64,000 nucleotides of DNA from IMGVR_UViG_3300046810_000338:124001-188000, one strand, 5' to 3'. Positions 2,424-33,580 are shown, counted from the stretch's first letter. Program-made: numbers and translations. Notes: generated from the letters alone by a model not told the origin.

Positions 2424-2470
2424 CAAGAAGTCCTTCTATTTACAGGTGTTTCATTTTTGGGGTGCTGGCT

Positions 2471-4693
2471 ATGGCCAACGACTTTTATCAGATCTATCGC
2501 GCTGATGTGATGCGTTTGGCCAAGACCATGGTCATCAAATCAGAACTCAGTGCGGTGGCTACGAACAGAGCACTGGTAGAAAAAGGTTTTGCCGTTAGTG
2601 CTGATAAAAGCACCTGGCGTTACTACATGAATATCGCGGGTCTATATCATTCTACGAACTCACCGATGCAGGTGGTGTCGCAGGATACTGGCGAGATCAT
2701 TGATTTTACGGTAGAAAACCTCAAGATACACCGGGCAACCGCTCGTGAATACGCTTACGGCTCTCGTTATTACAACACGTTGAAGAATCAGTACAAGCGT
2801 CAGGAATCGCTGATTCTGGGTATCCTTAATCCGGTACCCATGGCCAAAGCCATCGCTGCCAGAGAGTACGAGATTCTTTGGATCGATCCTTTGCTGATCG
2901 ACTCCAACGAGGAAAGCTTCCAGCAACTGGTGCAGAATCAAATCTACGCAGCGATGGATCGTTGGCACGTAGAGATGTATTCGTTCACTGAAGACCTCTA
3001 CGACTGGCTACGCTTTGAGTTGTTGTTCACCAACCTGCCACAGTTCATCATGGTAGCGCGGACACAACTTAGCCGTACAATCCAATCGCACAGCTTCCAC
3101 ATCCGTCAGTTCCTGGCCAGCAATGGCCAACTGGATGTGTACATGGATGCCATGACGAAGAAGCAACAACTCTTCTTCTACCGCAACCTTACGTATCTGC
3201 ACAGGTTCCCTGGTCATACCTCGTCGTTTAATCTGCTGGTACAGAAGGTCTTGGAAGACCGTCAGTTCCCGCTTGCAGATTACACCATGATTCAAAACGT
3301 TTCAGACATGCCTAACAGCGTCGAGCCTACCGTTGAATTGGTTCGTCGTGAGACCACCGCTGATTATGCCGGTGTTGCACCTACCAAGGTGAGCGTGTTG
3401 AGCGTGTTGCAGAAACAGGTTAAGTTGGCTCGCAGTAACGGCGCATTGATTGGCGATAACGAAACTGAGACCACCAGTCTCATGTTGTCTGCCAAGTCCA
3501 GCACTGTGCAAACCAAGGTGCTTGAGTCCAGCGTGTTGGACATGACGGATTCCCAGATTTATCGTCTGGAAGACTTCCTGCTCAACAACTGGGTGTACCT
3601 GTCTGCCAATGAACGGTATCGGGCTCTGGTAACGTTTGCCAACCCTCGTACTGGGGTGCCTGTACAACTGACGGCACTGGATGCGTTTATCCTGTTCCTG
3701 TTTGCGTACAACCGGTCGATGGGTCAGGATTTACCATTGGTGCCAAACATCAATGCGATCTGTGTGCCTAAGACGCCTGCTCCTACTCCAGCAGAGATGT
3801 TGGATAAGATGGGCACCGTTGGACACTCGACACTGGAAGTGGCGATTGCACTGTGGGACATGTTGCCTCCCATTGGTACGTTCACCTCAACCGATGCTTT
3901 CTACAATGCGATCTACGCCCTTTACATTGGGGCCATGGACCAGCAGACGGTGGCATCGTTTCAGGGTAACTACAACTCCCGTGCTGAAGCTGAAGCCATG
4001 GGCATGTACATGTTCCAGGACGTGTTCGTTAACCTGGCCGATGAAATCCCTACTGCACAGTGGCTGAATGTGCGGGGTCTGGATTCGGTGCTGGACTTCA
4101 GTCAGGCTGAGCTGGATGATCTGTGGACCAACCTGTTGTCTAAAGCTACAGGGATGGACCTTAACACCACGATGAGCCTCAACGATATTCACCGTGCCAT
4201 GATCGGTATCATGTCCCGGCTTTCGTCGTACACGGTTCAGTACCTGCGTGAGATCAACGATGGTCCTCTCAAGCCACTGGCGGTTAAGTTCATTCGCTTC
4301 GGTGATTCTGACAGCGCTGAGGAAGCCACTCACAACTGGGACCTGTTAAAGCTTAAGGAGTTTACTTCCAAAGGCTCCAGCTGGAACCGGTCTGATATGA
4401 CCAAGCTTGAGGATTACCCAATCATCAAGCGGGAAGTGTCGGGTGAGGGCAATGCTTTCATGAAAGTGGGGTTGGAGTTTGAGCAGAACACCACCGCTCA
4501 GGGTTACTCTGAATGGACCCTGCCTACTCTGAGAATGTTTGACCCGGTATTAAGGCCACCTACCGACCTTAGTAACCTCAGCGGTACCAGTGAGTTAAGA
4601 CTGGCGCCTCTGGAACCTGCACTGCGTGACATCCGTGAGTTGATTACGGTAACGACGTTGTCTGGGTTGAACTACCCTAATCGGCTTACCTAG
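2471..4693 (+). CDS. Virion structural/baseplate protein (phiKZ gp128-like)
   Basis: About 740 aa. The N-terminus (MANDFYQIYRADVMRLAKTMVIKS...WRYYMNIAGLYH) resembles recalled jumbo-phage gp128 homologues. ATG 2471 is preferred over GTG 2462. Confidence 0.6.
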   Translation: MANDFYQIYRADVMRLAKTMVIKSELSAVATNRALVEKGFAVSADKSTWRYYMNIAGLYHSTNSPMQVVSQDTGEIIDFTVENLKIHRATAREYAYGSRYYNTLKNQYKRQESLILGILNPVPMAKAIAAREYEILWIDPLLIDSNEESFQQLVQNQIYAAMDRWHVEMYSFTEDLYDWLRFELLFTNLPQFIMVARTQLSRTIQSHSFHIRQFLASNGQLDVYMDAMTKKQQLFFYRNLTYLHRFPGHTSSFNLLVQKVLEDRQFPLADYTMIQNVSDMPNSVEPTVELVRRETTADYAGVAPTKVSVLSVLQKQVKLARSNGALIGDNETETTSLMLSAKSSTVQTKVLESSVLDMTDSQIYRLEDFLLNNWVYLSANERYRALVTFANPRTGVPVQLTALDAFILFLFAYNRSMGQDLPLVPNINAICVPKTPAPTPAEMLDKMGTVGHSTLEVAIALWDMLPPIGTFTSTDAFYNAIYALYIGAMDQQTVASFQGNYNSRAEAEAMGMYMFQDVFVNLADEIPTAQWLNVRGLDSVLDFSQAELDDLWTNLLSKATGMDLNTTMSLNDIHRAMIGIMSRLSSYTVQYLREINDGPLKPLAVKFIRFGDSDSAEEATHNWDLLKLKEFTSKGSSWNRSDMTKLEDYPIIKREVSGEGNAFMKVGLEFEQNTTAQGYSEWTLPTLRMFDPVLRPPTDLSNLSGTSELRLAPLEPALRDIRELITVTTLSGLNYPNRLT

Positions 4694-4694
4694 C

Positions 4695-4726
4695 CATAGC
4701 GGGCCTTGTGCCCGCTTATTTTTTTG
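4695..4726 (+). terminator. Intrinsic terminator-like hairpin with U-tract
   Basis: AGCGGGC(4698-4704)/GCCCGCT(4710-4716) followed by TATTTTTTTG, immediately after the 4693 stop. Confidence 0.7.
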
Positions 4727-4743
4727 TCGAATGGAAGAAGATC

Positions 4744-5961
4744 ATGAGCGACTTCTATTATGAACGTGCAGTTCGGCTTCCGCCAGCGGATGCCGTTTTG
4801 TTCATGTTCAACTATGAAAACAATACCGGCATCAACATGGACGAGGTGACCATCAGTCCTCCCTATGGCACTGATGAGCAAGGCCACACGATGGTCAAGA
4901 TTACTGGCCTCAACGGAACCACGGTGGCAGGTGACGGTGGTTATTTTAACACCGCAACCTTTGGCTACTACCGCGTGGCTCTGAGTCAGATTGGGTTGTC
5001 GACCACGGGCTCGTTCTTTGACGTGATTGGTTCGCGACCAGGGTTCTTGGACATTGTTGAAGAGCTGACTCGTCAGACCCAGTTCAATTGCTCACCTGAG
5101 GATTTCTATCAGGTGGAGTATCGCTCGGACATCGAGGGCGGGTATGTGCTCAAAGCGCATCCCAATAGCTGGCGATTTACGGGAGAGATCAACATTGGTC
5201 ATCCTCGTCGTGCTAACTTCGACGATGTAATCCCAGCGGGTCTTGAGCTGTCGTTTGAAGACTACAACGGCATCTTCGATCTCAAGGTGGACCGTTTGGC
5301 TATCAACTACGACCTGACCGAATACCCAACGGTTGTTCCTAAACTGATTCAGGGTTACAAGGTTCAGCTCAACGACATCGTGTTGTTCAACACGCTGCTC
5401 GTTCAGGCAGATTACAGTGGGTTGACACTGACCAACTCCACAACGCCTGACTCATTGCTCAACATCTACCAGGCACAGGTGATCTACCACGGACCCCTGC
5501 GCCAAGACAAAGACCCCAAGCACCTGTTCACCTCTCGTGACATGGTGATCGAGCTGCAACCGTCTAGCACCTATGCGCCATTGGCCCTGGGGACTATGAA
5601 GCTTTACTATGCTTCTACGGGGACAGTGGTTCCAACATCTGGCAATGAGTTGATCTATGCGATGCAAATGTACAGTACGCCGGCCTCTGGTAGCCTTCAG
5701 GCAGCCTTCTGGTCTCAGTGCGTAGTGGGCAAGGTGTTGGAGGACAACGGCGGTGCTATGGACGTCTCAGTGGCTTTTGAGGCAGCCTTTGGTCTAAGTT
5801 ATGATGCACTCATCAAACGCGCCTTGAAAGTGACCTACAATGGTCCTGCTAGACCTAACGATTTGGTCCCAGAAGGCAAGACGACTTGTAACGTGGTTGA
5901 ACTCTCCGTCGTGGACAGTCCGCTCACATTTGTCTATGGGCCAGCCAAGGTGTACTACTAA
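4744..5961 (+). CDS. Virion structural protein (phiKZ gp130-like; probable baseplate/fibre-associated)
   Basis: Long ORF with beta-rich composition in a structural operon. ATG 4744 follows a GGAAGAAG purine tract; the track start at 4708 lies inside the terminator. Confidence 0.55.
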   Translation: MSDFYYERAVRLPPADAVLFMFNYENNTGINMDEVTISPPYGTDEQGHTMVKITGLNGTTVAGDGGYFNTATFGYYRVALSQIGLSTTGSFFDVIGSRPGFLDIVEELTRQTQFNCSPEDFYQVEYRSDIEGGYVLKAHPNSWRFTGEINIGHPRRANFDDVIPAGLELSFEDYNGIFDLKVDRLAINYDLTEYPTVVPKLIQGYKVQLNDIVLFNTLLVQADYSGLTLTNSTTPDSLLNIYQAQVIYHGPLRQDKDPKHLFTSRDMVIELQPSSTYAPLALGTMKLYYASTGTVVPTSGNELIYAMQMYSTPASGSLQAAFWSQCVVGKVLEDNGGAMDVSVAFEAAFGLSYDALIKRALKVTYNGPARPNDLVPEGKTTCNVVELSVVDSPLTFVYGPAKVYY

Positions 5962-9620: not shown

Positions 9621-10889
9621 TTAGATGAACAGGTCTCGCTTGATATCCAAGATGGCCCCACGGCCAGGCTGTAGGCGGTGCAAGTTGGTACGCACTGAGT
9701 CTACGGCTGGAGCGTTATGCCATTGGATAGAATGCATGCGCAGCCGGTCGTGAATGCCATCTGGCACAATGACCACCCATTTGTCCCCTTCGTCTTCCAA
9801 CACGTAACTCATCAATCGCCCATCGTGGTGAACGGCTGGAGAGGTTACGGTTTCGTGGTGCAGGAACACACAAGGATGCTGTGTGGTTTCCAAAGGGATC
9901 TTGTCGCAATAGACGTCCGGCGACTGGACGGCAATGACAAACGATTGACTGGTGGTCAACAGTTCCAGCAGGAAGTTACGACCCTTGGACTCTGGTACAG
10001 AGATCATGGTGGGGGCCAGTGGGTTGGTGGAGATAGCCGCTCGGATACGCTGCAAGTCCAGATACTTCTCAGCCTTGAGGAAGTTCTCCAAGTACGGGTA
10101 GCGCAACAGGTTCAGTTCAAAACCTGAGTTACCGATCGAGCGGAACGTGCTGCCCAGTGGAATCAGGTAACCACACAGAGAGAGCATGGCCGTGCAGTTA
10201 TCCCAATCCACATCCTGTACGTTGAGATACAGCGGGGTGTCCAACGTGGCACCGTCTTCGGGCAGCCCTGTGATCATGCTTTCCACGATCGGATAGATCT
10301 TGCACCCCCCAAGAGGAGCCAGACTCACAATGCCCACCGAGTTGATCTTGGCTACCTGAGCAGACCGACCACCTTGCTTAACGTAGAGCCCACGTTCAGA
10401 GGAGTAGGTGCGATGCAGAAAGCCGTTGACTTCCACCAGTACGTTTGCCTCAACCAGTCCAGGGGAAAGCGTTGGGTGAGTCAGCAGTAGGTCTGTACGC
10501 TCAGAGAACGGCACTGTTGGATTAGGTCCAGCACCTGGGATAACTTCCTCTACTGAAAAGTTTGCTTCCAATGCGTTGGCGTACTTGGCTTTCACCGTCT
10601 TGGTTGCGGTGAACTCGACAGTAGGCAGTGCTTTGTTAGCCAGTGCAATGAACCAATTGGCAACGGTGATTGCCGAGAAGAAGGGTTGAACGAATGTCGC
10701 CCCATCCTGAGTGAAGTCGAAAAGGTATTGCACGTTGGGACTGGCATCGTGAGTCAAGATCATGCGGCTTTGACCATAAGTTGCAGTCAGTGTCCGAACG
10801 TCCGCTGCGAGGACTTCGGCCAGGTCAACTTCTAACCAGCGCATTCCATTGGCATTCACTTTGTGATAGAACTTTCTTAGCGTGTACAT
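9621..10889 (-). CDS. Virion structural protein (conserved in phiKZ-like phages)
   Basis: 422-aa ORF. Motifs NVLVEVNGFLHRT and LSLCGYL, and a position divergent from the tail-fibre genes, are recalled from relatives. Confidence 0.55.
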   Translation of the reverse strand: MYTLRKFYHKVNANGMRWLEVDLAEVLAADVRTLTATYGQSRMILTHDASPNVQYLFDFTQDGATFVQPFFSAITVANWFIALANKALPTVEFTATKTVKAKYANALEANFSVEEVIPGAGPNPTVPFSERTDLLLTHPTLSPGLVEANVLVEVNGFLHRTYSSERGLYVKQGGRSAQVAKINSVGIVSLAPLGGCKIYPIVESMITGLPEDGATLDTPLYLNVQDVDWDNCTAMLSLCGYLIPLGSTFRSIGNSGFELNLLRYPYLENFLKAEKYLDLQRIRAAISTNPLAPTMISVPESKGRNFLLELLTTSQSFVIAVQSPDVYCDKIPLETTQHPCVFLHHETVTSPAVHHDGRLMSYVLEDEGDKWVVIVPDGIHDRLRMHSIQWHNAPAVDSVRTNLHRLQPGRGAILDIKRDLFI

Positions 10890-10992: not shown

Positions 10993-13620
10993 ATGGCAAC
11001 TGATCTCAACACTGTAACCCTCCCCTTCGACCGCTGGGGGACTGCCCTCACCAACAAGCGTGAAGGCGAACGGTACGAGCTGACCGCTGTAACGTGGTCG
11101 GAATTCAACATAATCATCCCGCAGTATGCCCCTTTTTACTCGGCCTCCATCGACTACCTCGTGCATTACCCTAGCGGTGACAAACTGTATCGTGGCATTC
11201 ACTGGATCGAAGGCTGGTACTACCAGTCCGCCTCCGGTGAGATCGGCCTGGACTTGCATTGCTGCATTTACTTCTACGATCCAACGCTGAGCGGGGAGAT
11301 TCTTATCCCAAGCTATCAGGCGATGGGTGGGGAGTGGCAACTCAACGGTATTCTGTTGACTCAGATCCTGGCTAACAAGCTGCTGAACCCACTGCGTTAC
11401 TACTGGGAACAGATTGCTAACCTGCCTGAGATCTTCAACCCGCTGGACCATGACCAGGATATCCAAGACTTCACCAAACTGGGTGACCTGATCGACGTTC
11501 TGCAAGACATGGCTCGTGCGATTGACAGCACCACCGGCGATGCCGGCGCTGACTTCCGTGCACACATGATCAACTACAACAACGTTCACCAGGTAAACAA
11601 AGCGCAGGTCGGGTTGCCGTTGGTTCAGAACTACGGCATTGCTACGGCTTCTGACATCGCTCAAGGTGTGATGACCTCAACGGTGTACATGAACCCACCG
11701 ATGACCAACCTGATGATCCAGCAGATTGCCATTGCTGCCCTGGCTCAACACACCGCCGACCAGACCAACAGCCACCATGTGACTGCTGCTCAAACCGGTG
11801 CGTACAGTCAGTTGGAAATCAACGCGATGTTGGAGTCCCTGGCCAACGGGTTGCTGTACAACATCAAAGCCTACCGTCTGGAAGGCAAAAGTGTTAGCGA
11901 CATCGTGACCATGGCCAAGGAGGATTTGAATGCCTCCATCGACGCCATCAGCAAGAACGTTCAGGCCATTGTGGACAACGTTCTCAAAGATGCTCAAGTT
12001 ACCAACGCCACTCGCTTTGATAACAAGACATCGGCTGAATGGAACGTACTGATTGCTCAGTCGGCCACCGACGTAGCAACTGGTTTGATCGCTACGAAGA
12101 TGGCTGCGCTCAGTGCTACCAACTGGACGTCGATTCCTTCCATCGAAGATCTGATCAACTTGCAGATCGCTGCGGCACCAAAAGATGCCAACGGCAACCC
12201 GATCGTGCTGAACCCGCTGAACGTGACGGATAAAACCGTCGTCTTCTTTGGCGAGTACACTGCGTTCAAAGCCAACGTGGTCAACGGTGCGACAGTGCTG
12301 GAGCCTAACCAGTTCCCGCTAACGATCCAGTACAAGGCCGTGGACACCGTAAGCGATCTGTCGATCCATGCCGAGGTCACGTATAACGCTGTCATGAAAA
12401 ATGGCACTGTCATTTACACGACCGTGCTGGCCAATCCAGAAGCGACCATGATCCCAGTGATCCGTCGTCACCCAACTGACCTTACCAAAGTTCAGGTGGG
12501 CATGCGTTGGGACGCATCGAGCATGCCAGAGATTGGCTATCAGGTCATGATGGGTGTGTCGATGTTCGCCAAACTGGCAGCACCTATCGCCTGGCACACT
12601 GACGCGGCTAACGCAGGTGTTATCACCTTGCCTGCCAACTACGTCGAAGTGGTCAAGCGGATTGAGTTGGTAGGGGATGCCTCGGGTGCTGGTAAGGACT
12701 GGACTGCCGACATCACTGCCCTTAAGAAGGCGCAGGATGATCTGAAAGCTTCGATTGGCGTCATTCAGGACGCCCTCACGCTGTTCAGTAAAAACGCTGC
12801 GACAATGGGTAACCGTGTATCCGCATTGGAACGACTGAACACCCGTAACCTGACGATGTTCGCTGCTGCGAGCATCACTGGTACGGCTGGGGTCAATGTG
12901 GCTCAACCAGTTCTGGGTTGGTTTGCAGAGGCGTTGGTTACAGCTGCTACTCCAATCACGATGACCTTCCAGTTGGACAAAGGTTACATCACCTACCGCA
13001 TTGCCTACGACTTCAATTCGGCAGTGCTGCATGCGGCGTCCGACCACGACGACCTGACTACCCGTCTGTTGCCGGTGGTTACTCTGGATAGTCGCACTGT
13101 TGACGGCGTTACCAGTCAGTACCTGCGTCTGGGTGCCATCAACTTCGATGCTGCCAAGCAACTGACCATGGTTAACATCGTGTCGGTGGGCACTGCGGTG
13201 ATGGTCTTGGCTGCCCCGGTCTACAGTAACGTTGTGGACTCCAGTGCAGTAACGGTTCCGCCTGGCTTCACGCTGACCAAGTTCAGCAGTGCAACTCGGG
13301 TAGAGCTGAATGCTGTGTCGATGGCGGTCACTCAGCTGACACCGGCAGTGATGGCGGGCGATTCCTCTATCTCGGCAGCTGACACGAACATCATTGACTT
13401 GAGTGTCTTGGATGAAACCGTGTTCGATGTAGCGCATCCTAAAGTGACGGTCAGTCTTCTGGACGACACCGTAGGTAGTGCGACCCATGGCATGTACATC
13501 AACTCTGAGGCGGTCATTGTTGTGGCAACCGATGGCACCGCGGTGTATCTGGTTAACACCGATCCGGCCAATGCAGTGGACTGTCGTTACCGGGTGGAAG
13601 TTCCACGACTTCCTGTTTAA
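10993..13620 (+). CDS. Tail fibre / baseplate fibre protein (phiKZ gp145-like N-terminus)
   Basis: N-terminal IIIPQYAPFY domain; fibre repeats HMINYNNVHQVNKAQVGLPLVQNY and HTADQTNSHHVTAAQTG; coiled coil; beta-rich C-terminus with GMYINSEAVIVVA. Confidence 0.75.
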   Translation: MATDLNTVTLPFDRWGTALTNKREGERYELTAVTWSEFNIIIPQYAPFYSASIDYLVHYPSGDKLYRGIHWIEGWYYQSASGEIGLDLHCCIYFYDPTLSGEILIPSYQAMGGEWQLNGILLTQILANKLLNPLRYYWEQIANLPEIFNPLDHDQDIQDFTKLGDLIDVLQDMARAIDSTTGDAGADFRAHMINYNNVHQVNKAQVGLPLVQNYGIATASDIAQGVMTSTVYMNPPMTNLMIQQIAIAALAQHTADQTNSHHVTAAQTGAYSQLEINAMLESLANGLLYNIKAYRLEGKSVSDIVTMAKEDLNASIDAISKNVQAIVDNVLKDAQVTNATRFDNKTSAEWNVLIAQSATDVATGLIATKMAALSATNWTSIPSIEDLINLQIAAAPKDANGNPIVLNPLNVTDKTVVFFGEYTAFKANVVNGATVLEPNQFPLTIQYKAVDTVSDLSIHAEVTYNAVMKNGTVIYTTVLANPEATMIPVIRRHPTDLTKVQVGMRWDASSMPEIGYQVMMGVSMFAKLAAPIAWHTDAANAGVITLPANYVEVVKRIELVGDASGAGKDWTADITALKKAQDDLKASIGVIQDALTLFSKNAATMGNRVSALERLNTRNLTMFAAASITGTAGVNVAQPVLGWFAEALVTAATPITMTFQLDKGYITYRIAYDFNSAVLHAASDHDDLTTRLLPVVTLDSRTVDGVTSQYLRLGAINFDAAKQLTMVNIVSVGTAVMVLAAPVYSNVVDSSAVTVPPGFTLTKFSSATRVELNAVSMAVTQLTPAVMAGDSSISAADTNIIDLSVLDETVFDVAHPKVTVSLLDDTVGSATHGMYINSEAVIVVATDGTAVYLVNTDPANAVDCRYRVEVPRLPV

Positions 13621-13668: not shown

Positions 13669-14511
13669 ATGTCCATTCGGCCAGTCAAGTACGAAATTGA
13701 TAAAACCGGTCTTAACCCCAATAACTTGGTTCTCAATGAGGATCATGTTCTGCCGGCTTCGGGGAAACGCTTTCTTGTCACGGACAATGGACCGTTTTAC
13801 ACCCATTCTGTTGTTTTGACAGACATGGCGACTGGTCAGGTTCTGGCACCTAGAACACAGTACACCGCTATCCAGCTGGAAGAAGAAGCCACGCTGGAAT
13901 CGGGCAAAGAAGTTTGCTCTATTCTCATCATCGACGATGACACGGTCAGTGCTAACGTGATGGTCACCTACCAGTGCTATGGCGGCTGGATGAGTTATTC
14001 TGTTCGAGCCATTCTGGAGATGATCCAGAACCTTGATCTGGATAACCGGGTGATTGATTGGGGTATGATTGTTGGTGCCCCTGATCGTTATCCTCCAGCA
14101 CCTCACGCTCACCCACTGTCTGACATTTACGGTTGGAGCAAACTGTTCCCTGCCTTGAATGCCATCCGTGATGCCATTCTGCGTGGCGATGAAGCCAAGT
14201 TCGATGCTATCCGTACAAGCTTTGCAGCAGAGATTGCCAGACTTGAAGGGCGCATCAATGCAAACGACGGTATATTGCAGATCCACATTGCTGACCACGG
14301 CAACCCTCACCAGGTTGACAAGGCTCAAGTTGGCCTGCCTTTAGTACCAAACTTTGCCATGGCTACCAAGCTTGAGGCAACTGCCGGTGTCTTGGACACT
14401 CGGTTCATGAGCCCACTGCGTGTAAGTGATTCTGTCAACTACATCAACGATGGCATGTTGGCCGAACTCTCCGCGCTGTGCCAAAGTCTGACGGTGGTCT
14501 TCGAGGCATAA
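13669..14511 (+). CDS. Tail-fibre-associated protein (phiKZ gp146-like N-terminal domain)
   Basis: KYEIDKTGLNPNNLVLNEDH, DNRVIDWGMIVGAP..YPPAPHAH and the fibre repeat HIADHGNPHQVDKAQVGLPLVPNF. Confidence 0.7.
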   Translation: MSIRPVKYEIDKTGLNPNNLVLNEDHVLPASGKRFLVTDNGPFYTHSVVLTDMATGQVLAPRTQYTAIQLEEEATLESGKEVCSILIIDDDTVSANVMVTYQCYGGWMSYSVRAILEMIQNLDLDNRVIDWGMIVGAPDRYPPAPHAHPLSDIYGWSKLFPALNAIRDAILRGDEAKFDAIRTSFAAEIARLEGRINANDGILQIHIADHGNPHQVDKAQVGLPLVPNFAMATKLEATAGVLDTRFMSPLRVSDSVNYINDGMLAELSALCQSLTVVFEA

Positions 14512-14514
14512 TCC

Positions 14515-15783
14515 ATGGAAAACCTGGCTGCTTACAAGTCAAGGTTCTCAGCGATGATTGAATCCCTCAAACGGTACGCTGAAGTCAGCGGTGCCGTTTG
14601 TTTGGATGGGGCTCGTAACTTTGTGGCCCAAGGTGAAACCCATACCTTCAACATCACGAACTACGACCGTTTCAGTACGTATGCGGTGACTACCAATCAG
14701 GGGTCGGTTACCCTGATTAAAGACACCATCACGATCACCACGTCCGCCACCTTAACCCCAGTTAATCCCTTTGTACTGACTGTTCGTAAGAACGGAATTA
14801 CGCGGGTGATTAATATGAAAATTGTCTCCATTGGGGTTTCGCCGATCGAGTTCATTGCTCCAACGCCGTTTCAGTTCATCGACGGCAACTCGACCTTGTT
14901 GTCGGTTAAGCCGTTCGATGTTTACCCAGCTGGCAGTCAAACGCATGTTAGTACGGATTGGCAAGTTTCTGCTGATCCCAACTTTATCAGCGTGGCCTTC
15001 CAGTCCATGGGTGACGCGGTCAACAAGCTTTCGATCAATGCACTTGGATTGCCTTACGGTACCAGGTTGTATGCTCGGGCCAGACACAATGGTAGTTCGA
15101 CCAATGCCGCTATCAATCAGGGCCCATGGGTTAACGTAGAGTTCAGAACAGGTCAGACTCGTTTGACCAATTTCGATACCAGTTGGGTCACCAGTTGGGA
15201 AGAAGGAATTCTGCGTCAAACCAGTCGCAACACTGCGTGGGACACTCAAGCTGAGCGCTTCAATCAAGACACTCAGCAATACGAGACCTACACCCGGCAG
15301 ACCAGTCGGACTACGTTGTTTGACACGGTTGAATCGTATCAACGACAGACTAACCATTACACTGATAACTTTACCGAATGGGATACGACCAAGCAGGTCT
15401 ACACCAGCTACCAGACTTCTCAGGTCACTGGTTACTGGCAGGCAGGCGGTCCGCGGTACAGTTCTTACGTGTCGGCTGTGGCCAGATACCAGTATGGTCC
15501 GCAAGGTGTCTTCGATGCCAACGGTAACCCAACTGGTGAAGTGATCATGGTCAACCAGTTCATGGGTTACGACTATGTGCCGGTAAACGTCTATGTCGGT
15601 CAGAATCCAGACTACTACGTGAGTTACAACACCGCCTATCAGGCAGGTCGTTGGACAGACTACATCACGCATAAAACGTCTGGCTATAAAGGCCAAACCT
15701 ACTACCTGACAGCAATTGATCCACGACAGACTAGTCGGGTCACTCACGCTACAACAGAGCGCTCTACCCGAGTCGATCCATAG
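14515..15783 (+). CDS. Fibre-like protein copy A (Ig/FN3-like N-half, Thr/Ser-rich repeat C-half)
   Basis: FN3-like STDWQVSADPNF...LPYGTRLYARARHNG and repeated TS-x-x-T-x-W/F/Y motifs. Clear paralogue of 16771-18039. Confidence 0.65.
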   Translation: MENLAAYKSRFSAMIESLKRYAEVSGAVCLDGARNFVAQGETHTFNITNYDRFSTYAVTTNQGSVTLIKDTITITTSATLTPVNPFVLTVRKNGITRVINMKIVSIGVSPIEFIAPTPFQFIDGNSTLLSVKPFDVYPAGSQTHVSTDWQVSADPNFISVAFQSMGDAVNKLSINALGLPYGTRLYARARHNGSSTNAAINQGPWVNVEFRTGQTRLTNFDTSWVTSWEEGILRQTSRNTAWDTQAERFNQDTQQYETYTRQTSRTTLFDTVESYQRQTNHYTDNFTEWDTTKQVYTSYQTSQVTGYWQAGGPRYSSYVSAVARYQYGPQGVFDANGNPTGEVIMVNQFMGYDYVPVNVYVGQNPDYYVSYNTAYQAGRWTDYITHKTSGYKGQTYYLTAIDPRQTSRVTHATTERSTRVDP

Positions 15784-15801
15784 GTCGGGGGGTAGAGTAA
15801 T

Positions 15802-15819
15802 GGGGGAGGCGACTCCCCC
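15802..15819 (+). terminator. GC-rich hairpin
   Basis: GGGGGAG-GCGA-CTCCCCC between fibre copy A and the next gene. Confidence 0.45.
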
Positions 15820-15834
15820 GTCTTTACCCACGGG

Positions 15835-16737
15835 GTGTTTACATTGAATCCAGTTGACCGTTTGTACCTAGGTTCCCCTCAGGCATCTGAAGTCTCCCGC
15901 ATTGGTCCCAATCAAAGGACCTGTGACAATGATGCCATTTTGGAGTTGGAGAAACTCATTGATCGGATGTGTCCTCTGGCCGTGACGTGCGATGCCCGTC
16001 CCTGCCACCCGCCATTCTTCGACGAATTCTGCTATACCGACATCCAGAATGGGTTGATGCTGCGCACGTTGTCGAGTGAGTTGAATGCTCGTTCGATGAT
16101 GTACGCTTCTAATCAAGAAGCTCGGGAAGCGTTTCCTATCGAGAAGGTTATCGATAAGTACGCATTGGGCGACAATGGCCGTAAGTATCGACGTGTCATC
16201 TTTTTGCCAGGCAACAACTCTGTGTCGTTCATCGACCAGAATCGCATGGCGCAACTGATGGCTACCGGGGATTGGTTTATTAAACCACATCCCGTCTGCA
16301 TTCCTGAAATGGTGAAAGACCTGGCCCGTGTATACGGCTACAGTCGCATCATTGAACCCAACGTATCTGGACATCGTCTATTGGTCGATGCCCAAGAGAT
16401 CGCCACCACCGCCGCCTCTGAGATGTACCTGATGGCAAGGCTGATGGACAAGCCGGTCCTCAACGTTGGGGCGTTTGTCAACCAACACCTAATGTCGTAC
16501 GATTCGATCGTTCGACTTCTGACCAATCGGGATACAGACAAGGCCATCATCAACCGTTGTTTGATGTCGGACTCCTCTGGCTATATTCGTCCCGAGTGGC
16601 CGCTGGAACTGAACCAGAAAATCATTGCCAACTACATCGACTTCGTCATGCACGAACGCGAGAAGTTCAGGATGGTCACCCAGCAGCGCCTGGTGGCTGA
16701 CACCTTTGAAGTTCGCAGTTGGCAGGGTAAGGTCTAG
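15835..16737 (+). CDS. Glycosyltransferase-like (GT-B / capsule-synthesis KpsS-like) protein
   Basis: VIFLPGNN...WFIKPHP...DAQEIATTAASEMYLMARLMDKPVLNV follows the pattern of the C-terminal nucleotide-sugar-binding Rossmann domain (KxHP; T..S..G.EA...GKPV). The start is uncertain (GTG). Confidence 0.5.
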   Translation: MFTLNPVDRLYLGSPQASEVSRIGPNQRTCDNDAILELEKLIDRMCPLAVTCDARPCHPPFFDEFCYTDIQNGLMLRTLSSELNARSMMYASNQEAREAFPIEKVIDKYALGDNGRKYRRVIFLPGNNSVSFIDQNRMAQLMATGDWFIKPHPVCIPEMVKDLARVYGYSRIIEPNVSGHRLLVDAQEIATTAASEMYLMARLMDKPVLNVGAFVNQHLMSYDSIVRLLTNRDTDKAIINRCLMSDSSGYIRPEWPLELNQKIIANYIDFVMHEREKFRMVTQQRLVADTFEVRSWQGKV

Positions 16738-16770
16738 CGTTACAGATTTACTCACTATTGGGAACAGTCA

Positions 16771-18039
16771 ATGGATAATTTAACGGAGTATCAGAGCGAC
16801 TTTTCCGCCATGGTGGCATCGCTCAAGCGTTATGCCGAAGTGGCAGGTGCTGTGGCGCTGGACGGTTTGAAAGGCATCATTGCTGAAGGTGAAACCCATA
16901 CCTTCAATATCACGAACTATGACATCTTCAGCACCTACACAGTGTCCTCTAACCAAGGTACCGTGTCCATTGCCAAAGATGTCATCACCATTTCGACTTT
17001 GCCAGGCGTGCGGGTAATCAATCCGTATCTGCTTAAGGTAACCAAGAATGGGGTGCCGCGCACAATCGAGATGAAGATTGTGTCCACAGGTGTTTCGCCC
17101 GTGGATATTCTGGCACCGATTGCCATGGAAACCTTCGATACCAATGCCCTGACTATCCGCACGTCGGACTTCGCTGTTTATCCGGTTGGCAGCCAGACGC
17201 ATGTTTCGTCGGACTACCAGATTGCCAGCGACCCCGACTTTACCAACATCGTCTGGTCGTCGATGGCAGACACGGTTAACAAGACTGTCATCTTGGTTAC
17301 CGACCTGCCTTACGCTGAGAAGTTCTACATCCGAGCCAGGCATCGCGGTAGCAGCGCAGACGTGACTGCTAACTTAGGTGATTGGACCAGTGTGGCCTTC
17401 CGTACAGGCAAAACCAAACTGACCAACTTTGCCACCAGTTGGGACACCAGTTGGGATGTGGGTCGCGTCCGTCAGACCAGCCGTCAAACAGCTTGGGCAA
17501 CCGATGTGGTCAAGTGGAATGAAGATGCGCAGGGTTATCAAACCCAGCAGCGTCAGACAAGTCGCCTGACCACCTTCGATACTGTCGAAGCGTATGTTCG
17601 TCAGACCAATCATTACACTGACGACTACACCGAGTGGGACACCACCAAACAAGTCTACACCAGCTACACTGTCTCTCAGATGACGGGTTACTGGCAAGCA
17701 GGTGGTGTACGTTACTCCAGCTACATGAGCTATGGCCAAGAGCAGCATGCTCGCTACACGGGTATCCCTGGTATTCCTGGCGTGCCAGACACCGGCTCTG
17801 ACTGGATGACCATCTGGTACGAGAACAACGGTGGTAGTTTGGTGACAGTGCCTGTGGGTACTAACCCAGATGTCTACGTGAGCTACGCCACGGCGTACCA
17901 AGCGGGTAACTGGACCACGTACACCACCCGTAAGTCGTCTGGCTTCAAAGGCCAAACCTACTACGACACTGCGATTGCGACGAGCCAAACTCATCGCACT
18001 ACCAGTATTCAAACTGAACGCAATACTGACGCCATCTAA
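16771..18039 (+). CDS. Fibre-like protein copy B (paralogue of 14515-15783)
   Basis: 422 aa, colinear with copy A. Shared blocks include GETHTFNITNYD, RQTNHYTD.TEWDTTKQVYTSY, TGYWQAGG.RYSSY and KGQTYY. Confidence 0.65.
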   Translation: MDNLTEYQSDFSAMVASLKRYAEVAGAVALDGLKGIIAEGETHTFNITNYDIFSTYTVSSNQGTVSIAKDVITISTLPGVRVINPYLLKVTKNGVPRTIEMKIVSTGVSPVDILAPIAMETFDTNALTIRTSDFAVYPVGSQTHVSSDYQIASDPDFTNIVWSSMADTVNKTVILVTDLPYAEKFYIRARHRGSSADVTANLGDWTSVAFRTGKTKLTNFATSWDTSWDVGRVRQTSRQTAWATDVVKWNEDAQGYQTQQRQTSRLTTFDTVEAYVRQTNHYTDDYTEWDTTKQVYTSYTVSQMTGYWQAGGVRYSSYMSYGQEQHARYTGIPGIPGVPDTGSDWMTIWYENNGGSLVTVPVGTNPDVYVSYATAYQAGNWTTYTTRKSSGFKGQTYYDTAIATSQTHRTTSIQTERNTDAI

Positions 18040-18053
18040 GGCTAGGAGCAGTC

Positions 18054-18677
18054 ATGTCTGTTGCACTGTCTGATTTCAACAAGAAGTTCATCATCACTCG
18101 CTACACCGGCATCGAAGCCGGTTACGTGAATGATCCATCCGATCTGGGTGGTGAGACCAACCACGGTATCACCAAAGGTTTGGCGACTCAGTACGCCGCT
18201 GACCTGAAAGCCAAGTTCGGTTGGGACGGCACCATGCGTAACCTGTCCACTGACGCAGCGTTCTATCTGTACGACGTTGAGTTCTGGGGCAAGATGCAGT
18301 TGGACAACGTCTTCAGTCTGCATCCTCTGATTGCCGACAAGATGTTCGACATCGGTATAAACGCTGGCAAGACGCGTTCGGTGACTTTCCTGCAAGAGTT
18401 CCTGAACGTCAACAACAACGGTCAGAAGCTGTACGCTGACCTCGTGGTAGACGGTGGGATCGGTACCAAGACCTTCAGTGCCCTGCAAGGCTTTGTTACT
18501 GCTCGTGGCAAGGATGGCCTAAAAACCCTCCTGCACTGCCTGATCGCTCGTCAGACCAGCTACTACACCGACATCTCGATGGCGCGTGAGGCTAATGAGC
18601 GCTTTACCTGGGGATGGTTCGGCAGAGCTTACAACTCAGCTGCCGATTACCAGGCACTCGGTTACCTGTACCACTAA
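18054..18677 (+). CDS. Endolysin, glycoside hydrolase family 108 with C-terminal peptidoglycan-binding domain
   Basis: EAGYVNDPSDLGGETNHGIT (GH108 EGGY..D..D.GG.T..GIT), KMFDIGINAG, LVVDGGIGTKT and NERFTWGWF. Confidence 0.9.
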   Translation: MSVALSDFNKKFIITRYTGIEAGYVNDPSDLGGETNHGITKGLATQYAADLKAKFGWDGTMRNLSTDAAFYLYDVEFWGKMQLDNVFSLHPLIADKMFDIGINAGKTRSVTFLQEFLNVNNNGQKLYADLVVDGGIGTKTFSALQGFVTARGKDGLKTLLHCLIARQTSYYTDISMAREANERFTWGWFGRAYNSAADYQALGYLYH

Positions 18678-29809: not shown

Positions 29810-30123
29810 TTGATTCTACTCTCGAAGTTTTCAGAGATAATCCTTTCTACCAAAGCCTGGCTCTGTTTCAGAGCCGGAGTCGCCGGCCAAAGCGCTTCTG
29901 CCTGTGTGCGGTTGAGCCTGAACTGCTTGAACTTCGGTACGCGGTCGTACCAGAAGTGACCCCGGTCAGTGACCAGCACGGTGGAGCGGTTGCGGGTAAG
30001 CCCGATGTGGTAAACCCGCTTGCTCCCGATGTTGACGCCATGCTCATCGAGGAAGCACAGTTGAACAAAGTCGGTGGGCACCAGAGTGCCCATTACGTTG
30101 ATACCAGGATTGTTAGGAATCAT
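29806..30123 (-). CDS. Hypothetical protein
   Basis: 105 aa, coupled to the sbcC stop. Confidence 0.55.
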   Translation of the reverse strand: MIPNNPGINVMGTLVPTDFVQLCFLDEHGVNIGSKRVYHIGLTRNRSTVLVTDRGHFWYDRVPKFKQFRLNRTQAEALWPATPALKQSQALVERIISENFESRIK

Positions 30124-32597: not shown

Positions 32598-32659
32598 GGC
32601 TAAATCCTGTGGCTGGGCATTCTCTAATAAAGTGCCCCTAATCTTTAGGAGATAACATC

Positions 32660-33580
32660 GTGGAAGATGATCGCGATCTATCAAAGTTTAAGCTCTATTC
32701 ACTGGGCACCGCGGTCGATAACAATGACTTTGGACTGTGGGATATTGAAGTTACTCCCATTGAACAGCTCAACCAATTGGATGGCGTCTTGGTTAACCAG
32801 GGCGTGTCTATAGAAAGCTCTGGGACCGACTCTGCGGGCAATGCTTACGCAGACAAGGCTGTGACCTCAACTACCATTAAAGCCACCTGGATGGGCTTAG
32901 GGGAGTCTAACAGACGTACCGCACCTAACGTGGTATCGGGCGAAGAGATTCTCATCTACACCTACGAACAGACAGGCGTCTACTATTGGACGTGTCGGCA
33001 CAGTAACAACAATCGTCGTCGATTGGAAACGGTGGTTATGGCCTGGAGCGGTTCATCTGCCAGTGGCGAGAAGGCAATGAACGACGACGATAGCTACATG
33101 TTGGAAGTCAGCACGCATAAGAAGCGAGTGCTCTTCACTAACAGCCGTGCCAACGGTGAGCTGAGTAAATTCAACATTGCCAGCGATCCAGGGGTAGGTA
33201 AGTTCACAGTGGCCGACGATCACGACAACGAGGTCACCATGGATTCGTTGGAGAACCGTGTCACACTCATCACTGGTAACGACTGTGAGGTCACTCTCAA
33301 AGGGACCAACCTTGACATTACAGTGCCAGGCAATGAGACCCACACGATCCAAGGCAATCTGAACATCACTGTAAATGGCAATGCCTTGGTTAACGTGAAA
33401 GGCAATGCTACTGTGACGGTGGCCGGGTCAGTTGACTACACCGCCGCCAGCATGGCTTTCAAAGCAGCCAACTTTACCTACACAGGTATCTTTGAAATCC
33501 AAGGTACGCTAAACGTGACCGGTGCAACCACGTTGAACGGTGCAAGCAGTCCTCTTCCAATCACTGCTCCAAACATTTGA
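32660..33580 (+). CDS. Baseplate central spike / Gp5-like beta-helix protein (phiKZ gp164-like)
   Basis: AGGAG RBS with GTG start. N-terminal OB-fold-like region (IKATWMGLGESNRRTAPNV) and C-terminal beta-helix repeats (NETHTIQGNLNITVNGNALVNVKGNATVTVAG). Confidence 0.75.
   Translation: MEDDRDLSKFKLYSLGTAVDNNDFGLWDIEVTPIEQLNQLDGVLVNQGVSIESSGTDSAGNAYADKAVTSTTIKATWMGLGESNRRTAPNVVSGEEILIYTYEQTGVYYWTCRHSNNNRRRLETVVMAWSGSSASGEKAMNDDDSYMLEVSTHKKRVLFTNSRANGELSKFNIASDPGVGKFTVADDHDNEVTMDSLENRVTLITGNDCEVTLKGTNLDITVPGNETHTIQGNLNITVNGNALVNVKGNATVTVAGSVDYTAASMAFKAANFTYTGIFEIQGTLNVTGATTLNGASSPLPITAPNI

Follow-up and report, generated by a model that had tools for sequence, protein, structure and literature searches.

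Introduction

Retaining beta-Kdo glycosyltransferases build bacterial capsule and LPS glycans. They include KpsC (GT107), WbbB (GT99) and KrkA (GT140), and related enzymes include KpsS and the Pse-transferase KpsS1 (GT118). These enzymes have a modified two-domain GT-B-like fold, a (K/R)xHP motif in the C-terminal domain that binds CMP in Kdo- and sialyl-transferases (PMC12887879, PMC10148158) and, in GT99, GT107 and GT140, an invariant QxxxD motif supplying the Asp nucleophile (PMC10148158, PMC12887879). Protein-directed systems are also known. Mycobacteriophage glycosyltransferases decorate virion proteins at C-terminal regions (Freeman et al. 2023, as summarised in PMC12619734), and the autotransporter heptosyltransferases TibC/TibA and Aah/AIDA-I pair a GT-B-type enzyme with a repetitive beta-rich adhesin, which is hyper-glycosylated on many hydroxyl residues in the cytoplasm using the LPS precursor ADP-heptose (PMC4358343). 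Flagellins are O-glycosylated with CMP-nonulosonates (Maf, FlmG) and Ser-rich-repeat adhesins by GtfA/B, in each case by a dedicated soluble enzyme that modifies multiple Ser/Thr residues of a filament or adhesin subunit before export or assembly. GT60 enzymes are polypeptide/Skp1 GlcNAc-transferases (Pfam GlcNAc, PF11397).

Here we analyze a phage locus in which two paralogous Thr- and aromatic-rich fibre proteins flank an enzyme predicted to resemble the Kdo transferases. It lies in a 64,000-nucleotide stretch, IMGVR_UViG_3300046810_000338:124001-188000 (hereafter the window). A sequence-only reading had proposed that the middle gene, with GT-B/KpsS-like motifs, glycosylates or chaperones the fibres, or that the three genes form a virion-borne module recognising or modifying host capsule or LPS, and knew of no characterised system of this kind in phiKZ-like phages. 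We found no description of the module in the literature we could search.

Results

Two fibre paralogues flank a 300-aa gene

The arrangement described from sequence alone is real. All three ORFs lie on the + strand, and the locus contains the following features:

13669-14511 (+), 280-aa fibre anchor (virion-attachment N-domain only)
14515-15783 (+), fibre paralogue A, 422 aa: helix 2-24, Ig-like domain about 25-105, FN3-like domain 106-213, Thr/aromatic-rich distal half 214-422
15154-15780 (+), proposed acceptor domain of paralogue A (residues 214-422)
15790-15829 (+), bulged 17-bp RNA hairpin between paralogue A and the enzyme gene
15835-16737 (+), predicted KpsC/WbbB-like glycosyltransferase-fold enzyme, 300 aa, GTG start; a cytidine-nucleotide-dependent transferase candidate
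16207-16218 (+), P125-G126-N-N128, after the first strand of the C-terminal Rossmann domain
16282-16293 (+), K150-P-H152-P153, the (K/R)xHP cytidine-nucleotide motif
16405-16422 (+), T191-T192-A-A-S195-E196, candidate phosphate/ribose-binding element
16771-18039 (+), fibre paralogue B, 422 aa, same architecture as A; its Thr/aromatic-rich half is 17410-18036

Fibre-type genes lie upstream (10993-13620 and 13669-14511, phrog_2163) and a GH108/PG_binding_3 endolysin lies downstream (18054-18677). An independent Logan assembly of what is probably the same rhizosphere sample gave identical sequence. The two 422-aa proteins are colinear, with 57% identity over 419 residues and one gap (E 3e-166). 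At the DNA level they have diverged throughout, with no near-identical stretches that would suggest recent conversion.

An AF2 model of the fibre paralogue was confident for residues 1-213 (block means 59-92, mostly above 70) and showed a helix followed by two beta-sandwich domains. These matched the NCAM Ig5-FN1 tandem (Z 11.0 over residues 25-216) and many single FN3 domains (rmsd 2.3-3.0 Å over residues 106-216), and residues 134-213 aligned to repeats of a protein, P0004, that hit Pfam PhoD_N and Ig_Rha78A_N. The helix + Ig + FN3 shaft is homologous to that of two bona fide tail fibres, P0156 and P0157, which begin with Phage_tail_fib (PF12571; sub-threshold hits, E 0.0011 and 0.0002) and carry Kelch or Lcl_C tips. 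It is also homologous to part of a 651-aa fibre with a phrog_2163-type anchor in one of the loci examined below (L010). By shared modules and location in the fibre gene block, the paralogues qualify as tail fibre proteins, although their presence in the virion was not examined.

The C-half of each paralogue (210-422) is Thr- and aromatic-rich, with Thr at 16-18%, Thr+Ser at 23-26% and Tyr+Trp+Phe at 15-16%. Ser itself is not enriched, so the earlier description of these halves as Thr/Ser-rich was slightly overstated. Of 109 window ORFs of at least 120 aa, these two have the highest T+S+Y+W density per 100 aa (0.44 and 0.43). The distal half of paralogue A has 10 [R/K]-x-T sites, including three RQT(S/N)(R/H)xT units, and eight [R/K]-x-T positions are shared with paralogue B (216, 234, 238, 261, 265, 277, 408/409, 416/417). 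Residues 331-360 are only 27% identical between the paralogues and are a likely specificity patch. In paralogue A the AF2 pLDDT of the distal half was below 50, with low-confidence beta-strands, the ESM Atlas model was also poor, and no PDB sequence relative was found.

The 280-aa ORF upstream of paralogue A probably belongs to the module too. It matched phrog_2163 ('virion structural protein', E 3.7e-77) only over profile positions 5-266 of 574, and tblastn found jumbo-phage fibre N-termini in 290 records. It aligned to residues 3-203 of the single 651-aa protein in L010, whose residues 227-392 align to the 422-aa paralogues, and it is in the same frame as 14515-15783, separated only by TAA TCC. 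It is probably the proximal piece that carries the 422-aa fibre(s). Between paralogue A and the enzyme gene, the hairpin ends 5 nt before the GTG start. The fold of 15770-15860 gave -37.4 kcal/mol (z -2.5 against shuffles), and a terminator scan flagged only sub-stems. Speculatively, the hairpin could act as an attenuator or stabiliser that sets enzyme dosage.

The middle protein is predicted to resemble Kdo transferases but lacks their nucleophile motif

The motifs IFLPGNN (122-128), FIKPHP (148-153) and TTAASEMYLMARLMDKPV (191-208), from which a GT-B/KpsS-like enzyme had been guessed, are all present in the middle gene. A fold comparison had been proposed in advance as a test of this guess, and it came out positive. 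The protein modelled at pLDDT 95.6 (pTM 0.91) with a GT-B-derived fold of two alpha/beta domains, and two independent aligners placed it nearest to the retaining beta-Kdo transferases. The top Foldseek hit in the PDB was WbbB (E 3.9e-5, probability 1.00), and VIA-align gave KpsC 6mgb (Z 10.5, 222 residues aligned), KpsC 6mgd (Z 8.6), WbbB (Z 7.9) and KrkA (Z 7.0). In AlphaFold DB it was nearest to KpsC/KpsS homologues and 'capsule biosynthesis' clusters, with hits including FixF, LipA and LpsZ, and ESM Atlas neighbours carry Capsule_synth. Profile-to-sequence hhalign to E. coli KpsC-N and KpsS gave E about 1e-5, over about 85 residues only.

We identified 207 representative homologues and examined conservation in 96. 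K150, H152 and P153 are invariant (96/96), aligning with VKVHP of KpsC and IKHHP of KpsS, and the (K/R)xHP motif is present in all 16 linked enzymes described below. Also conserved are E196 (93/96), S195 (75/96, plus T in 19), G126 and N128 (94/96 each), D53 (93/96) and D107-K108-Y109 (88-95/96). The T191-E196 element aligns to the TSQ...GKPV segment of KpsC, and KrkA uses S271/S272 and E276 in the same way (PMC12887879). The public gene call starts at M45 and drops conserved R22, G24 and E39.

At the place where KpsC, WbbB and KrkA carry QxxxD, the family has P-G-x-N with no conserved Asp following. No conserved Q...D lies between that strand and the HP motif in the 16 linked enzymes. Two show sporadic, non-conserved matches, one of them (locus L006) from a window anchored on an earlier KxHP-like match. 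This absence rests on sequence and secondary-structure register, without coordinate superposition. E39, D53, E64 and E82 are conserved in the N-terminal domain, but they were not superposed on the KpsC or KrkA bases, and whether one of them is the general-base Glu is left undecided. Lacking QxxxD, which defines GT99, GT107 and GT140, the protein is a relative and not a member of those families, and it is not a bona fide KpsC/KpsS member.

Sequence models do not recognise the family as a glycosyltransferase, a history that PMC10148158 also notes for KpsC. The window protein had no Pfam hit at E 0.1 and so does not match Capsule_synth (PF05159) at its gathering score; only 3 of 96 homologues gave weak hits (best E 0.001). 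The comparison with GT-B sialyltransferases (GT38/52/80) could be read either way: the HP motif is present, but structural matches were partial and weaker (polysialyltransferase Z 5.9; GT80 enzymes Z 4.3-5.0, C-domain only). The protein is not a Phage_tail_APC (PF16778), Tfa or gp38-type chaperone by sequence or predicted fold, giving no such Pfam or PHROG hit and matching phrog_26179, function unknown.

The enzyme recurs beside Thr-rich proteins

Conserved co-occurrence with TSxxT-type fibres had likewise been set out beforehand as a test, and it too came out positive. In 16 of 16 loci examined, a Thr/Ser/aromatic-rich protein or domain lies within two genes of the enzyme. These loci include a podophage, T4-like phages, jumbo phages and metagenomic contigs, and the enzymes share 18-49% identity (median 26%). 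The module is not specific to phiKZ-like phages. Cultured carriers include Caulobacter phages Lullwater and Cr30 and Vibrio phage KVP40; in KVP40 the pair does not sit among tail genes. The 16 loci are not a random sample of the 207 representatives. Only 2 of 119 non-neighbouring genes reach the same composition, and both are fibre proteins of the same modules. The module is really a two-part unit of Thr-rich acceptor plus enzyme, here with two acceptors.

The Thr-rich partners share a directional motif. R-x-T occurs 104 times against 36.6 expected from shuffles (z 12.5) and T[ST][RK]xT occurs 34 times against 3.2 (z 17.6), about tenfold, while the reversed T-x-R gives z 1.5. This motif was chosen after looking at the sequences, and homology among the partners is weak (E 1e-4 to 1e-2 in a tiny database). 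Relatives of the enzyme are fused to a SET protein methyltransferase (E 1e-13), a SAM methyltransferase (Methyltransf_23) or a GT60-type polypeptide GlcNAc-transferase (Pfam GlcNAc, E 2e-15). The last of these (P0124) lies 4 nt downstream of a 643-aa ORF made of about 60 tandem WGGQSRTTS repeats. A separate Phage_tail_APC chaperone gene lies beside the enzyme in two loci (L008 and L012), and a short unscored chaperone-like ORF in a third (L014), indicating that the enzyme is not simply the fibre chaperone.

Discussion

The interpretation offered from sequence alone is supported, and of its alternatives we favour glycosylation of the fibres, because the nucleotide-binding residues are invariant, relatives are fused to protein-modifying enzymes, and a separate chaperone gene sits beside the enzyme in some loci. 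In this view, which we hold with moderate confidence, the 300-aa protein is a soluble, cytoplasmic glycosyltransferase of the KpsC/KpsS/WbbB/KrkA structural superfamily that binds a cytidine-nucleotide-activated sugar. The most likely donor is a CMP-ulosonic acid that the Gram-negative host already makes, such as CMP-Kdo or, in some hosts, a CMP-nonulosonate. The enzyme would transfer this sugar to Thr (or Ser) side chains in the distal halves of the two paralogues, probably at the recurrent (S/Q)-R-x-T or T-S/T-R/K-x-T sites, before or during fibre assembly. Because the paralogues share a shaft and most acceptor sites but differ in a variable patch, the phage would display two glycosylated tips with different specificities, probably docked on the 280-aa anchor.

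Our analysis establishes the fold, at the level of a confident model, together with the conserved nucleotide motif, the gene linkage, the motif enrichment and the domain fusions, whereas catalysis, donor, acceptor residue, timing and benefit (tip stability, protease or antibody shielding, or receptor binding through the glycan) are deduced from them. There is no biochemical evidence in any member: retaining transfer of Kdo from CMP-beta-Kdo was not assayed, no enzyme-dependent glycan on a virion protein was measured, and we found no virion proteome or glycoproteome. Without QxxxD, the chemistry cannot be copied from KpsC, and loss of catalysis is not excluded. Kdo linked to protein has no precedent that we know of. 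In the window proteins the Thr-rich half is only moderately enriched and may be a folded tip and not a mucin-like acceptor. Support for a virus-encoded virion glycosylation system is only indirect, from the linkage, the motif and the fusions.

Of the other explanations, each of which we consider unlikely, the likeliest is that the protein is an assembly factor, a possibly nucleotide-binding chaperone that holds or folds the aggregation-prone Thr/aromatic-rich beta-structure of the fibre tip without modifying it. The gene sits where fibre chaperones usually sit, directly after the distal fibre gene, the canonical nucleophile is missing, and the Thr-rich half is not foldable as a monomer in silico, as is common for chaperone-dependent trimeric tips. 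However, the strictly invariant residues are exactly the nucleotide-binding motif of the enzymes, fusions are to other transferases and not to chaperones, a separate chaperone co-occurs in some loci, and in KVP40 the Thr-rich partner is not among tail genes.

Almost equally doubtful is the same logic with different chemistry, in which the enzyme transfers a polyol-phosphate or another group from a CDP-activated donor (TagB/TagF/TarL-like) or builds a polymer (poly-Kdo or polysialic-like) primed on the Thr-rich domain, instead of adding single ulosonic-acid residues. TagB, TagF, TarL and Glyphos_transf proteins and a polysialyltransferase appear among weaker structural hits, one family member hits Pfam A-2_8-polyST, and the absence of QxxxD means that the KpsC mechanism does not apply directly. 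Yet the four best VIA-align hits are all Kdo transferases (Z 7.0-10.5, against 4.3 for TarL and 5.9 for the polysialyltransferase), the (K/R)xHP motif is described for sialyl- and Kdo-transferases (PMC12887879), and no second catalytic His of the TagF type is conserved.

Somewhat less likely still, the enzyme could act on the host envelope and not on the fibre, modifying LPS core or capsule during infection, for example to block superinfection or release progeny, while the Thr-rich tips bind that same glycan. Its nearest relatives all build capsule or LPS glycans, and phage glycosyltransferases that alter host serotype are known (as reviewed in PMC12619734). This reading does not explain the tight, orientation-conserved linkage in 16/16 loci or the fusions to SET and GT60 polypeptide transferases next to repeat proteins. 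The model is globular over its 300 residues, with no membrane anchor such as KpsC has, and all carriers with a known lifestyle are lytic. Chance adjacency or hitch-hiking of an unrelated moron, with the Thr-rich composition an ordinary feature of fibre tips, is very unlikely: although fibre proteins are often Thr/Ser-rich and two non-adjacent fibre proteins also reach the threshold, the pairing is 16/16 against a background of about 1.7% per gene, persists in KVP40 and across 18-49% enzyme identity, and comes with a shared directional motif.

Compared with the Kdo transferases, this enzyme shares the predicted fold, the CMP motif and the downstream S/T...E...GKPV segment. It differs in having P-G-x-N in place of QxxxD, no membrane-anchoring region and a single module of about 300 aa, and in being encoded by phages next to a protein and not in a glycan gene cluster, so that its presumed acceptor is a polypeptide and not a glycolipid or glycan. 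In the mycobacteriophages the targets are capsid and tail-tube subunits of phages of Gram-positive-type hosts; to our knowledge the enzymes are not KpsC-like, although their GT families were not examined here. In our locus the target would be the fibre tip in phages of Gram-negative hosts, with a dedicated repeat-motif acceptor. TibC/TibA and Aah/AIDA-I share an enzyme encoded beside its adhesin and an LPS-precursor donor (perhaps CMP-Kdo here), but they are bacterial and belong to a different GT family with a different nucleotide; the enzyme is a dodecamer and modifies Ser and not Thr (PMC4358343). The flagellin and Ser-rich-repeat systems, a comparison not tested here, have unrelated enzyme folds and families, and no viral examples are known. 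The GT60 domain is not present in the window and bears on the family's role and not on this gene's own chemistry.

The recurrence of the pairing in very different phages suggests a widespread, undescribed system that puts sugars on phage fibres. In its fullest form, which is tentative, a new glycosyltransferase family with a KpsC-like fold, a CMP motif and no QxxxD nucleophile O-links a host-derived ulosonic acid (Kdo or a nonulosonate) to Thr in an R-x-T-type sequon on fibre tips. If true, this would be the first protein-directed enzyme of the Kdo-transferase superfamily. It would also be the first fibre-glycosylation system in phages of Gram-negative bacteria, with a portable acceptor domain that ranges from about 8 sites in this window to about 60 tandem nonapeptides.

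The fibre block lies on a 228.5-kb metagenomic phage contig (IMGVR_UViG_3300046810_000338) from a rhizosphere sample. The phage is a phiKZ-type jumbo phage: it has a split RNA polymerase beta subunit (phrog_2986), and its fibre anchors are most like those of Pseudomonas, Ralstonia, Xanthomonas and Erwinia jumbo phages. Context genes at 30120-32684, 41124-42632 and 58010-59635 include an SbcC-like nuclease subunit, a UvsX-like recombinase and a phiKZ-type RNA polymerase beta-subunit fragment, and several large ORFs match only unknown-function PHROGs (3222, 3181). The gene order at the locus is as follows:

9621-10889, - strand: an ORF of exactly 422 aa just upstream of the fibre block (phrog_3337, unknown function, E 6e-59), unrelated to the paralogues
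10993-13620, + strand: an 875-aa fibre
13669-14511, + strand: a 280-aa ORF that contains only the fibre anchor domain
14515-15783, + strand: paralogue A (422 aa)
15790-15829: a bulged 17-bp hairpin
15835-16737, + strand: the 300-aa middle gene
16771-18039, + strand: paralogue B (422 aa)
18054-18677, + strand: a GH108 endolysin

The five consecutive genes starting at 10993, 13669, 14515, 15835 and 16771 are all in reading frame 1. The hairpin lies directly after the stop of paralogue A and ends 5 nt before the GTG start of the middle gene, with a GGAGG buried in its 5' arm. The 91-nt fold gives -37.4 kcal/mol (z -2.5), and it may set the enzyme-to-fibre expression ratio. An independent assembly is identical over the region, but probably derives from the same sample, and only one DNA run, also probably the source sample, holds the region, so there is no independent or RNA evidence. 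Megablast of the region against GenBank phages found nothing.

The fibre paralogues share a predicted Ig-FN3 shaft and a Thr-rich distal half

The two paralogues are 57% identical over their whole length. AF2 modelled residues 1-213 with good confidence as a helix (2-24) followed by two beta-sandwiches, whose best structural match is an Ig-FN3 tandem (Z 11.0). Residues 106-216 match single FN3 domains at rmsd 2.3-3.0 A. The same shaft module occurs in recognised tail fibres that start with the Phage_tail_fib domain (sub-threshold Pfam hits) and end in Kelch or Lcl_C tips, as well as in several paralogues of other jumbo-phage contigs. Pfam and NCBIfam gave nothing for the paralogues and PHROGs gave only families of unknown function; a word-indexed protein search found few relatives of the fibres, and tblastn with a 422-aa paralogue found none.

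In one related contig (L010), a single 651-aa protein (1999-3954) joins a phrog_2163-type anchor, this shaft and a distal domain. Its residues 3-203 align to the 280-aa ORF of the window and its residues 227-392 align to the paralogues, so the fibre in the window looks like a split gene. We infer that the 280-aa anchor probably carries one or both 422-aa proteins, perhaps through their N-terminal helix. Because the anchor ORF and paralogue A are in the same frame and separated only by TAA TCC before the ATG, we also considered stop-codon read-through joining the two. We found no evidence for it: TAA is a strong stop, and a GAGG lies 9 nt before the ATG.

The C-terminal halves (214-422) are Thr-rich (16-18%) and aromatic-rich (15-16%), with ordinary Ser content. 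They are not confidently foldable. AF2 of paralogue A with a 10-row alignment left residues 214-422 below pLDDT 50, the ESM Atlas model was also poor and its beta-barrel look-alikes (TM about 0.3) are not meaningful, and the PDB holds no sequence relative of this half. Between the paralogues, segment 271-300 is 83% identical and segment 331-360 only 27% identical, and eight [R/K]-x-T sites are positionally conserved.

The middle gene encodes a candidate cytidine-nucleotide-dependent transferase

Sequence libraries were uninformative about the middle gene. It had no Pfam or NCBIfam hit, it matched only phrog_26179 ('unknown function'), and a word-indexed protein search returned only the window's own proteins. 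An exhaustive HMMER search, however, found 207 cluster representatives, typically about 300 aa. The fold of this protein had been singled out in advance as a test of the sequence-only reading, which expected a glycosyltransferase. With 96 representatives as the alignment, AF2 gave a model with pLDDT 95.6 and pTM 0.91, and the structural comparisons agreed. Foldseek against the PDB ranked WbbB first (E 3.9e-5), followed by generic GT-B enzymes, and an independent aligner ranked KpsC-N (Z 10.5, 222 residues), KpsC-C (8.6), WbbB (7.9) and KrkA (7.0) as the top four. Swiss-Prot models gave FixF, LipA (the KpsC counterpart) and LpsZ (the KpsS counterpart), and AlphaFold clusters gave many 'capsule polysaccharide biosynthesis' proteins. 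BFVD gave a 321-aa unnamed phage protein (TM 0.83, probably the homologue in Caulobacter phage Cr30) and a KVP40-like Vibrio phage homologue (TM 0.70). Finally, a profile of the family aligned to E. coli CFT073 KpsC-N and KpsS with E about 1e-5, placing the family's IKPHP on VKVHP and IKHHP, and its S195-E196...K206 on the TSQ...GKPV segment.

Residues K150, H152 and P153 are invariant in 96 sequences, and E196, N128, G126, D53 and the D107-K108-Y109 triad are nearly so. In Kdo- and sialyl-transferases, (K/R)xHP holds the cytosine and phosphate of CMP, and an S/T pair plus a Glu holds the phosphate and ribose (PMC12887879). The structural papers also define these families by an invariant QxxxD whose Asp is the covalent nucleophile (PMC10148158, PMC12887879). 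That motif is absent here, as the corresponding loop reads P-G-x-N with no conserved acid after it, although this rests on sequence and secondary-structure register and not on a coordinate superposition. Candidates for what replaces the QxxxD Asp are D107, D53, E39, E64 and N128. We therefore call the protein a cytidine-nucleotide-dependent transferase candidate of the KpsC/WbbB structural superfamily, and not a member of GT99, GT107 or GT140.

The public gene call for this protein (256 aa, starting at M45) omits 15835-15966 and with it the conserved residues R22, G24 and E39. The ESM Atlas model of the truncated form is poor (pLDDT 0.59), compared with 95.6 for the long form with an alignment. 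The longer ORF, from GTG 15835 or TTG 15844, is the real one.

The enzyme lies near a Thr-rich protein in all 16 loci examined

Whether the pairing with Thr-rich fibres is kept in other phages had likewise been proposed beforehand as a test. We examined every homologue for which flanking DNA could be obtained. Single-protein scans of viral, metagenome and genome contigs gave only the source contig, one weak partial match (contig L018) or nothing, and the survey therefore rests on 16 loci, chosen by availability, and not on a full census. In each case a Thr/Ser/aromatic-rich protein or domain lies within two genes of the enzyme, usually directly upstream. The 16 enzymes share 18-49% identity (median 26%).

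In the Caulobacter podophage Lullwater, tail fibre gp40 is followed by the Thr-rich gp41 (T+S 40%) and then enzyme gp42. In the T4-like Caulobacter phage Cr30, fibre gp253 is followed by gp254 (Thr 20%, aromatic 23%), enzyme gp255 and then the neck genes. In Vibrio phage KVP40 (131224-132886), KVP40.0254, with TSRST/TTRSTAY repeats (T+S 48%), lies two genes before the enzyme homologue KVP40.0256; this pair sits beside QueC-like and radical-SAM genes and not among tail genes. The N-terminal 85 residues of KVP40.0254 contain a duplicated G-x-ISL/ISI...(D/Y)(L/Y)RG(G) motif of unknown meaning.

Three jumbo-phage contigs (L004, L009 and L010) carry fibres with the same shaft as the window and Thr-rich or aromatic tails ending in ...TSRxTE-like motifs. 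In L004 (459-9516), there are four fibre genes with FN3/PhoD_N-like domains, three upstream with a common N-terminus and one downstream with a phrog_2163-like anchor, but with different tips (FG-GAP/beta-propeller-like, Thr-rich, other). A DUF1353 gene follows the enzyme and the same GH108 endolysin lies downstream, so that this looks like a fibre cassette system. The pairing was also found in seven short contigs (L006, L007, L008, L011, L012, L014 and L017). A Phage_tail_APC (PF16778) tail-assembly chaperone gene lies immediately beside the enzyme gene in L008 (1223-1705) and L012 (1305-1808), as does a short chaperone-like ORF in L014 (1963-2217; judged by eye, with no Pfam hit on record), and in these phages the module has three parts.

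In two further contigs, relatives of the enzyme are fused to other domains. In L015, an E217-like myophage contig, an uncalled 120-aa ORF (4639-5001) full of SRQTTR/SRTTRW motifs sits directly upstream of a SET-domain fusion of the enzyme family, next to baseplate wedge and FN3 fibre genes, and an FN3 baseplate fibre nearby also has a Thr/Arg-rich tail. In L016, a 643-aa ORF (3066-4997) of about 60 tandem WGGQSRTTS units (27-bp repeat, 60.8 copies) ends 4 nt before a fusion of a GT60-type GlcNAc-transferase domain with the enzyme. The public gene call annotates the antisense strand at this repeat. A phmmer hit of the repeat protein to the Spt5 C-terminal nonapeptide repeat we regard as a compositional, low-complexity match.

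Among 119 genes more than two positions away from the enzyme, only two reach the composition threshold, and both are fibre proteins of the same modules. The partners share a directional motif. R-x-T occurs 104 times against 36.6 in composition-preserving shuffles (z 12.5), and T[ST][RK]xT occurs 34 times against 3.2 (z 17.6). We chose the motif after seeing the sequences, so these z-scores are indicative only, and the asymmetry between R-x-T and the mirror pattern T-x-R, which is at expectation, serves as the internal control. T-x-T is depleted (z -6.1), and we therefore reject an antifreeze-like TxT ladder. Homology among the Thr-rich partners is only weakly supported, and tblastn with one of them found nothing; we treat them as a motif and composition class.

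Discussion

The simplest account of these data is that the enzyme uses a CMP-activated sugar available in the infected Gram-negative cell to O-glycosylate Thr residues of the fibre's distal domain. CMP-Kdo is universal in such hosts, and CMP-nonulosonates occur in Caulobacter and Vibrio. No CMP-sugar biosynthesis gene was seen among the window ORFs scanned, which cover only 64 kb of the 228-kb genome. What our analysis shows is an invariant nucleotide site, a tight linkage of the pair across otherwise unrelated phages, a recurring motif that is short, directional and sequon-like, fusions of relatives to a SET protein methyltransferase, a SAM methyltransferase and a polypeptide GlcNAc-transferase, and, in three loci, a separate Phage_tail_APC chaperone (or, in L014, the short chaperone-like ORF) beside the enzyme. 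Each of these supports an enzymatic, protein-directed role, but glycosylation itself is inferred, as there is no biochemical or expression evidence. Without QxxxD, the reaction may run by another route, for example inverting, as in HP-motif sialyltransferases, and it is also possible that the acceptor's Arg helps to bind the donor carboxylate; both ideas are speculation. The function of the glycan is unknown, with tip stability, shielding and receptor contact all possible. The competing explanations are a different chemistry from a CDP donor, or polymer priming; a non-catalytic assembly factor; action on host glycans; and chance adjacency.

The nearest known enzymes are KpsC, KpsS, WbbB and KrkA. 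By logic, the nearest known systems are mycobacteriophage virion glycosylation (cited in PMC12619734) and the TibC/TibA and Aah/AIDA-I adhesin heptosylation pairs (PMC4358343). Flagellin and Ser-rich-repeat adhesin glycosylation are likewise among the nearest by logic. Full-text searches for fibre glycosylation, Kdo transferases in phages, Thr-rich phage proteins, Cr30 and KVP40 found no description of this pair. Virus-encoded protein glycosylation is already known; the claim made here, which rests on inference as no mass shift has been measured, is that this instance would involve a likely new GT family and a new acceptor class.

If correct, the enzyme would extend the KpsC/WbbB superfamily from glycolipid and glycan acceptors to proteins and would define a new GT family with a different catalytic arrangement, and the short R-x-T-type motif could serve as a sequon for glyco-engineering. 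The hypothesis is directly testable, because the cultured Caulobacter phages Lullwater and Cr30 and Vibrio phage KVP40 carry the pair. It would also assign a role to about 200 families of 'hypothetical' phage proteins and to their unannotated Thr-rich neighbours, some of which are mis-called by gene finders. Fibre tips decide host range, and a covalent glycan coat on them would change how receptor binding, phage neutralisation, stability and host-range engineering are understood for phages of Gram-negative bacteria.
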